A stretch of 64,000 bases of DNA from Bacillus subtilis subsp. subtilis str. 168 (GTDB lineage Bacteria; Bacillota; Bacilli; Bacillales; Bacillaceae). Below the pieces are notes generated by a model, which had not been told where the DNA came from, did not search any database, and was given only the letters and a program-made list of their open reading frames with translations. Position numbers and translations under genes: made by a program. The stretch is taken from NCBI RefSeq assembly GCF_000009045.1, contig NC_000964.3, positions 1 through 64,000 of the forward strand, read 5' to 3'. Below are positions 9,631 through 35,352 of this stretch, piece by piece (the stretch's first letter is position 1; each line of letters starts with the position of its first letter).

Positions 9631-9810
9631 TAAGTAGTCGCTTTGAGAGAAGCACACAAAGTTCTTTGAAAACTAAACAAGACAAAACGTACCTGTTAAT
9701 TCATTTTTATAAATCGCACAGCGATGTGCGTAGTCAGTCAAACTAGGGCCTGCACGACGCAGGTCACACAGGTGTCGCCGCAGGATGCGGTGAACTTAAC
9801 CTGTGATCCA

Positions 9811-11371
<1,561 letters not shown>

Positions 11372-14636: not shown

Positions 14637-14691
14637 ATTTTTGAATGATGTCACACCTGTTATCTAGTTTTGAGAGAACACTCTCAATTTG

Positions 14692-30161: not shown

Positions 30162-30278
30162 AATAAAGTCGCTTAAACGAGCGGTAAACAAAGTTCTTTG
30201 AAAACTAAACAAGACAAAACGTACCTGTTAATTCATTTTTATAAATCGCACAGCAATGTGCGTAGTCAGTCAAACTAC

Positions 30279-35103: not shown

Positions 35104-35236
35104 CATTTTGAATGATGTCACACCTGTTATCTAGTTTTGAGAGAACACCTCTCTAAAGGCGGAAGGTAAGGAAACTCCGCTAAGGGCTCTCACATCCTGT
35201 GAGAAACGCCCAGTACCTTCATCCTGAAGGCATTTG

Positions 35237-35352
35237 TTTGGTGGCGATAGCGAAGAGGTCACACCCGTTCCCATACCGAACACGGAAGTTAAGCTCTTCA
35301 GCGCCGATGGTAGTCGGGGGTTTCCCCCTGTGAGAGTAGGACGCCGCCAAGC
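35237..35352 (+). rRNA. rrnA-5S: 5S rRNA (rrnA)
   Basis: Matches 14692-14807. Confidence 0.98.

Follow-up and report, generated by a model that had tools for sequence, protein, structure and literature searches.

What occupies the leader of rrnO in Bacillus subtilis subsp. subtilis str. 168, right beside the mature 16S rRNA, is the question that this locus raises. In the window (the whole stretch of 64,000 nucleotides that was analysed, positions 1 to 64,000 of NC_000964.3), alignment of the two leaders places 65 nt at 9746–9810 of rrnO against a single C (30278) in rrnA. A second insert, of about 77 nt, lies in the 23S–5S spacer of rrnA, and is present in rrnA only among seven aligned 23S–5S spacers (that alignment did not take in an eighth visible spacer, which lies at 951 kb). 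The first-pass annotation, made from the sequence alone, described both inserts with their hairpins and regarded them as one twin-hairpin element in opposite orientations, belonging to a DNA-level family that lands in dispensable rrn spacers. Alignment and folding confirmed the rrnO insert and its hairpins, and the seven-spacer alignment together with folding likewise bore out the rrnA-only insert and its twin ATCCT-loop hairpins. The features are:

9746..9810, minus strand (the family strand): rrnO leader insert, a Bacillaceae-1 copy antisense to rRNA and adjoining the mature 16S 5′ end
9749..9763, plus strand: rrnO hairpin CCTGC-ACGAC-GCAGG, which is family hairpin 2 seen on the opposite strand, with a loop off consensus
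9767..9805, plus strand: rrnO outer stem (9767–9773 with 9799–9805) around CGCCGC-AGGAT-GCGGTG (9776–9792)
9812..11361, plus strand: 16S rRNA of rrnO; the RF01690 model's unpaired 5′ tail extends over its first bases, TTTAT
14637..14691, plus strand: empty 23S–5S spacer of rrnO, for comparison
30278..30278, plus strand: empty leader site of rrnA, the single C opposite the 65-nt rrnO insert
about 35154..35231, plus strand: rrnA-only spacer insert (~77 nt), a Bacillaceae-1 copy sense to rRNA, ending 6 nt before 5S
35184..35211, plus strand: rrnA GGGC/GCCC stem around hairpin TCTCAC-ATCCT-GTGAGA; the longer outer stem of the family is degenerate here, with two C.C mismatches
35216..35230, plus strand: rrnA hairpin 2, CCTTC-ATCCT-GAAGG
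35237..35352, plus strand: 5S rRNA of rrnA

The Two Inserts Are Copies of Bacillaceae-1

Both inserts are copies of the Bacillaceae-1 RNA (Rfam RF01690), lying on opposite strands. When the window was scanned against all Rfam families, RF01690 (curated gathering score, 35 bits) matched at 9749–9815 on the minus strand in rrnO with 72.6 bits and at 35164–35230 on the plus strand in rrnA with 62.6 bits, in both cases over model positions 1–67 of 67 (E-values 2e-11 and 4e-9). Because both inserts match the full-length model, they represent one family in opposite orientations, as the first-pass annotation had held.

In the Bacillaceae-1 module of ~67 nt, an outer stem encloses the first hairpin, a second hairpin comes after it, and both loops are close to RUCCUG. 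Both inserts carry the two-loop RUCCU consensus, except for one loop of rrnO. Read on the family strand, the rrnO copy has the loops AUCCU and GUCGU (non-consensus), a 7-bp outer stem and the internal loop GUUAAG/GAC, whereas in the rrnA copy both loops are AUCCU and the internal loop is CUAAG/AAC. One pair in the nested hairpin and outer stem region of rrnO (9767–9805) is G.U on the plus strand and A.C on the family strand.

The motif was defined in 2010 from varied gene contexts, at times beside rRNA operons, and its two RUCCU loops were taken to hint at a homodimeric protein partner (Weinberg et al., 2010, Genome Biol 11:R31). The reverse complement of Bacillaceae-1 fits the motif that CsrA binds, and its discoverers are reported to have been unsure of the strand (Gardner and Eldai, 2015). 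BSGatlas annotates eight copies in B. subtilis. The suggestion that the shared architecture had escaped prior description therefore fails, given the publication of RF01690 in 2010 and the BSGatlas annotation: the twin-hairpin architecture is already known and is not a new kind of element, and the finding adds no new family because the element has been in Rfam since 2010.

Target-site duplications, for which the first-pass annotation proposed to look, were not found at the rrn copies. Alignment of filled with empty leaders revealed neither these nor terminal inverted repeats at the leader insert, and alignment of filled with empty spacers revealed neither around the rrnA spacer insert.

The 951 kb 23S–5S spacer (rrnD; G000, about 951,385–951,465) has an A+T-rich insert of its own (~66 nt), in which a promoter-like pair, TTGATT … TATAAT, stands just 5′ of 5S. 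A hidden Bacillaceae-1 copy in this rrnD spacer was considered and rejected, as the insert is unrelated and has no match to the model.

Pairing, Covariation, and Strand

The fold z-scores of the inserts range from -2.1 to -3.9 as RNA and from -3.6 to -4.0 as DNA. Covariation was assessed in two sets of further copies (113 and 43) aligned to the covariance model, in which 93 and 97% of the pair cells, respectively, are paired. Compensatory cells numbered 426 and 186 versus 126 and 59 in shuffles, and none of 500 shuffles was as high; the compensatory stems noted in the first pass thus withstood the shuffled-control test proposed with them. Covariation scores were 0.63 and 0.79 (slid controls, <0.15), 16 of 17 and 15 of 17 pairs were changed on both sides, and one-sided (wobble) changes were confined to 24 of 1723 cells in the first set and 0 of 586 in the second. 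Covariation is therefore very strong and almost purely Watson–Crick. Across six genera, the RUCCUG loops are conserved, as are the unpaired positions CUAAG/AAC. Orthologous leader copies keep the fold through compensatory changes.

Mismatches in decayed copies, read on the Rfam strand, comprise 21 G.U, 41 A.C and 56 of other types, a spread that resembles neutral decay. An asymmetry between G.U and A.C was tried as a strand test (41 vs 21, p = 0.015) and rejected: there is no robust strand signature, because the A.C excess stems from the inherited C.A pair of one subfamily and genus g4 has 14 G.U and 14 A.C mismatches. In antisense rrn copies of four lineages, pairs that are A.C on the Rfam strand are G.U on the transcribed strand, and the reverse was seen in none, which suggests that it is the fold of the transcribed strand, be it one or the other, that is kept within rrn operons.

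Copies in the B. subtilis 168 Genome

Nine RF01690 matches (four in leaders, one in a spacer, three in 190-bp repeats, and one degenerate) were found in the genome (4,215,606 bp); bases 160001–176000 read N and fall outside the count, so that this copy number and the operon occupancy are lower bounds. On the published map, the masked interval holds three further rrn operons. The leader copies adjoin 16S and are all antisense to rRNA: besides rrnO, they occupy the leaders at 635 kb (rrnE on the published map), 946 kb (rrnD) and 3178 kb (rrnB). The leader of rrnA and those at 90.5 kb and 96.4 kb (rrnJ and rrnW on the same map) are empty. The element is thus missing from three of the seven visible leaders and seven of the eight visible 23S–5S spacers, and the comparison of filled with empty alleles in other rrn operons, which the first-pass annotation had recommended, yields both states at both kinds of site.

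The remaining copies are:

319 kb, 514 kb and 3774 kb: copies inside a dispersed repeat of ~190 bp
3830 kb: degenerate copy

By coordinates, the family strand of non-rrn copies is co-directional with replication in this genome and in two relatives.

Carriers of the Copies outside rrn

Of the 11 copies of the 190-bp repeat found in B. subtilis, three contain the module and eight do not; the module replaces a 17-nt hairpin that is found in the other eight. Four sibling species have neither the 319 kb repeat nor its module at the orthologous site; in B. subtilis the repeat is bordered by two copies of a 22-nt terminator hairpin. The 3774 kb block occurs in five relatives and is missing from three more distant ones. 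A 1564-bp element, with a 462-aa reading frame bearing DUF772 and DDE_Tnp_1_6 (Pfam domains typical of IS1182 transposases), is present in 12 copies in one genome (G044; L166:429–1992) and in two copies in another (G041; L167). On either side of this element stands one copy of the terminator hairpin into which it landed, and the element's first 20 nt match the end of the 190-bp repeat at 15 of 20 positions. Only the copies at 319 kb, 514 kb and 3774 kb are carried by IS1182-type mini-transposons that duplicate a terminator. On the two window inserts, the alignments of filled with empty sites revealed no arms of the 190-bp repeat.

Two ideas on the origin of this association were discarded. The module is not part of the full-length IS1182-type element, which contains no Bacillaceae-1 match. 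A derivation of the left arm of the 190-bp repeat from the reverse-complemented 16S 5′ end beside a leader copy was rejected because 45–80 of 1000 shuffles attained its score.

By their coordinates on the published gene map, the 319 kb and 514 kb copies correspond to yceJ and ydcA. The 190-bp repeats have been described as transcribed, conserved 3′ UTRs of nine genes, including these two (Rasmussen et al., 2009). Nothing direct on the "190-bp element" of Kunst 1997 was found in the literature searched.

Distribution and Occupancy in Relatives

Extending the scan to other Bacillaceae, as the first-pass annotation had suggested, revealed copies in 57 of 91 genomes of the family; the number per genome ranges from 0 to 49, and 34 of the 91 genomes have none. 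Across relatives, at least seven insertion points are used in rrn spacers. At one and the same junction with 16S, subtilis- and licheniformis-like genomes carry the element antisense, and five other members of the genus carry it in sense orientation. Further sites are:

88–91 nt after 16S
20 nt before 23S
5 nt after 23S
6–7 nt before 5S
after 5S, along with partial 5S repeats

Sibling species differ in the occupancy of orthologous operons. The equivalents of the rrnO and rrnA leaders are both filled in G037, the rrnA equivalent is filled and the rrnO equivalent empty in G005, no leader is filled in G029, and all eight are filled, in sense orientation, in G048. Presence/absence polymorphism is found among operons, between sibling species, and at two sites outside rrn, 319 kb and 3774 kb, and in other genera the orientation of the element relative to neighbouring genes is mixed. 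Because occupancy and orientation vary between species, the rrn copies are regarded as dispensable, and DNA-level events as having placed or removed them many times. The proposal of a DNA-level family in dispensable rrn spacers therefore stands as regards the orientation flip, the seven or more sites and the variable occupancy, and falls as regards the link to HUH enzymes that had been attached to it (see section Alternative Explanations).

Several loci have a composite structure. Genus g4 (L099, L100, L111; G086, G082) contains tandem arrays of 3–5 units of 180–198 nt with 84–95% matches, and these units hold further conserved sequence beyond the Bacillaceae-1 module. In genus g3 (L033:338–850, L035:932–1746), partial 5S copies of ~76 nt alternate with Bacillaceae-1 downstream of 5S, and element and 5S fragment appear to have been duplicated together. 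In G022 (L031:1501–2091), a leader with a sense element is followed by only a 16S fragment (model positions 58–351) and then by an empty 190-bp repeat, which looks like a truncated start of a pseudo-rrn operon. One 16S–23S spacer of G031 (L026:1501–1676) contains two copies on opposite strands, 44 nt apart.

A Proposed Dispersed Structured Module

The best-ranked reading, to which we assign slightly less than an even chance, is that the element is a structured module that can be dispensed with, that owes its dispersal to DNA-level events and that is passively transcribed. The module would be placed into DNA repeatedly, in either orientation. Among rrn operons it would spread by gene conversion, as the pattern of filled and empty operons suggests, and outside rrn it would spread by riding in IS1182-type mini-transposons (the 190-bp repeats). 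The rrn copies would be transcribed passively in the precursor, would have no ribosomal role, and would be removed by normal rRNA processing (RNase III and then RNase J1 for 16S; RNase M5 for 5S). The hairpins may be kept for two reasons: copying may need folded single strands, read at the conserved loops by a putative dimeric partner, and transcribed spacers may tolerate only compact folds.

This account is favoured by the occurrence of both orientations at one site, the many sites, the variable occupancy, the 0–49 copies per genome, the scarcity of G.U pairs, the three copies borne by mini-transposons and the mixed orientation relative to neighbouring genes in other genera. Against it, the rrn copies are without terminal inverted repeats or target duplication, no transposase here is able to move the module, and the full-length IS1182-type element is without it. 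In addition, conservation of the loops and of CUAAG/AAC across genera suits a selfish element no better than a conserved RNA-binding partner, the fact that leader copies of four lineages tolerate G.U on the transcribed strand alone points to selection on RNA as well, and short G+C-rich stems can be G.U-free for stability alone. Since loops and unpaired bases are conserved across genera and no insertion mechanism was found for the module, the rivals stay alive.

A more specific version is put forward tentatively, as a less likely possibility. Bacillaceae-1 may be a strand-symmetric hairpin module and not an sRNA gene, inserted at the DNA level without a resident transposase. It would prefer rRNA spacers, often beside mature 5′ ends and with no fixed orientation, and the interiors of IS1182-type mini-transposons, and its loops would be putative sites at which a dimeric protein of the host or of a mobile element acts on folded ssDNA.

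Alternative Explanations

The most serious rival holds that the Rfam strand is a functional RNA, acting in trans or within 3′ UTRs and spacers, with loops that either are bound by a homodimeric protein or pair with AGGA-type ribosome-binding sites. We consider it unlikely, yet well worth weighing. A functional RNA was the proposal of the discoverers (Weinberg et al., 2010), and it would fit the cross-genus conservation of loop and internal-loop bases. The non-rrn copies of B. subtilis all lie directly downstream of a gene on the same strand, and the 3774 kb copy is preceded, on the family strand, by a stop codon and followed by an intrinsic terminator. For yceJ and ydcA, transcription of the 3′ UTRs has been reported (Rasmussen, 2009), and the tandem arrays of 180–198-nt units in another genus resemble multi-copy small-RNA loci. 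However, the best-conserved rrn copies, namely the leader copies of the subtilis and licheniformis groups, are antisense, which means that the Rfam strand is not made there. The mismatches carry no wobble signature (G.U vs A.C, 21 vs 41 overall and 14 vs 14 in g4), the orientation to flanking genes is mixed, and more than a third of the genomes (34/91) do without a copy. Terminator-like sites, too, are equally common downstream on either strand: 118 non-rrn copies gave 46 versus 48, although hairpins of the carrier repeat dominate this signal, which therefore carries little information.

An improbable rival assigns the function to the opposite strand, whose hairpins each show CAGGAUG, the core of the CsrA-binding consensus, and could, judged by their sequence, serve as a putative decoy for the CsrA dimer, supplied by the strongly transcribed rrn leaders. 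CsrA dual-site binding works over 10–63 nt, and the spacing of the two loops is ~22 nt. Such a decoy has been proposed in the literature, with the doubt about the strand noted (Gardner and Eldai, 2015). Leaders of the rrnO type do transcribe this strand, whose fold is better than that of the Rfam strand (-33.5 vs -25.3 kcal/mol), and it is on this strand that the leader copies in four lineages bear G.U. However, the leader copies retain AGGAU in one loop only, the other being ACGAC (as in the rrnO transcript) or ACGAU. At other places the transcribed strand is the one that is not CsrA-like: this applies to the 23S–5S copies, most ITS copies, the MITE-borne copies and leader copies of the pumilus type, and the rrnA spacer transcript accordingly has AUCCU loops. 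CsrA itself is nearly universal (90 of 91 genomes), so that co-occurrence says little, whereas the element is absent from 34. B. subtilis CsrA is antagonised by the protein FliW, which also counts against an RNA decoy.

A working part in rRNA maturation, for instance in guiding or blocking RNase J1 or RNase M5 by the mature 5′ ends, is very doubtful. Several rrn sites do lie 0–20 nt upstream of the mature 5′ ends of 16S, 23S and 5S, and the fold is conserved in orthologous leaders; but most 23S–5S spacers and three leaders visible here do without the element, occupancy varies between sibling species and is nil in some, one site accepts both orientations, and, according to a published study, rrnA and rrnO gave the same results in processing.

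The association with HUH/RAYT or IS200/IS605 transposases that the first-pass annotation had expected did not materialize. The Y1 transposase domain (PF01797) has no match in the B. subtilis genome, with its nine copies, and is absent from 10–11 genomes that have at least 10 copies (10–27). Across the 91 genomes, transposase and element are distributed independently (2 × 2 table 23/34/14/20; Fisher p = 1.0), and nine genomes of genus g3 contain the transposase and no element. Movement of a REP- or PATE-like element by such an enzyme is therefore largely refuted and hardly credible, although a dimeric Y1 transposase would be well served by a pair of similar hairpins, and tandem arrays and patchy copy numbers recall REP elements.

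At one locus (G041:C1:3459714–3460394), a Bacillaceae-1 copy lies upstream of a gene for an IS200-like Y1 transposase, at a distance of ~260 nt. This proximity is probably a coincidence, because no element lies close to the two remaining copies of that IS.

Significance

To the published description of Bacillaceae-1, the present analysis adds the orientation flip at one rrn site, the many spacer positions, the species-specific occupancy, the lack of a wobble signature and the partial travel with mini-transposons. These additions bear on the published question of which strand, if any, is a functional RNA, and they advise caution in annotating Bacillaceae-1 loci as "sRNA genes." With filled and empty rrn operons side by side, a single genome also provides a natural test bed for the effects of spacer insertions on rRNA maturation.

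Comparison with Known Systems

The dispersed module shares single traits with several systems. The opposite strand of Bacillaceae-1 has GGA in hairpin loops, set in the context of the CsrA consensus, as do decoys of the CsrB/RsmZ type; this likeness is one of sequence only, and Bacillaceae-1 differs in having only two sites per unit and a transcribed strand that varies by locus. The 23S intervening sequences of Salmonella, Yersinia and Leptospira are stem-loop insertions that are distributed unevenly over the rrn operons of a genome and are cut from the precursor. Bacillaceae-1 resembles them in the stem-loop character and the uneven spread over the operons of one genome, whereas the intervening sequences sit in mature 23S and fragment the rRNA, and Bacillaceae-1 lies in spacers and outside rrn.

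REP/BIME elements with their RAYTs, and the PATEs of IS200/IS605, are likewise short, structured, multi-copy, sometimes tandem, orientation-free and intergenic. Here, however, there is no Y1 transposase or association with one, and the loops are conserved across genera and do not co-vary with a resident enzyme. With classical MITEs the module shares presence/absence polymorphism, but the terminal inverted repeats and target duplication of MITEs are absent at the window inserts. The 190-bp repeats, as miniatures of the IS1182 type, are closer still, in that they carry three of the nine copies, have filled and empty orthologous sites and come with a duplicated terminator hairpin; in contrast, the rrn copies are without repeat arms, and eight of the 11 repeats and the full-length IS are without the module.

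The system that the inserts match is Bacillaceae-1 (RF01690) itself. The deviations are minor: one off-consensus loop (GUCGU) and one A.C pair in rrnO, and a degenerate outer stem in rrnA. The nested hairpin followed by a second one, the RUCCU loops, the taxon and the proximity to rRNA operons are all the same, and there is no difference in kind.
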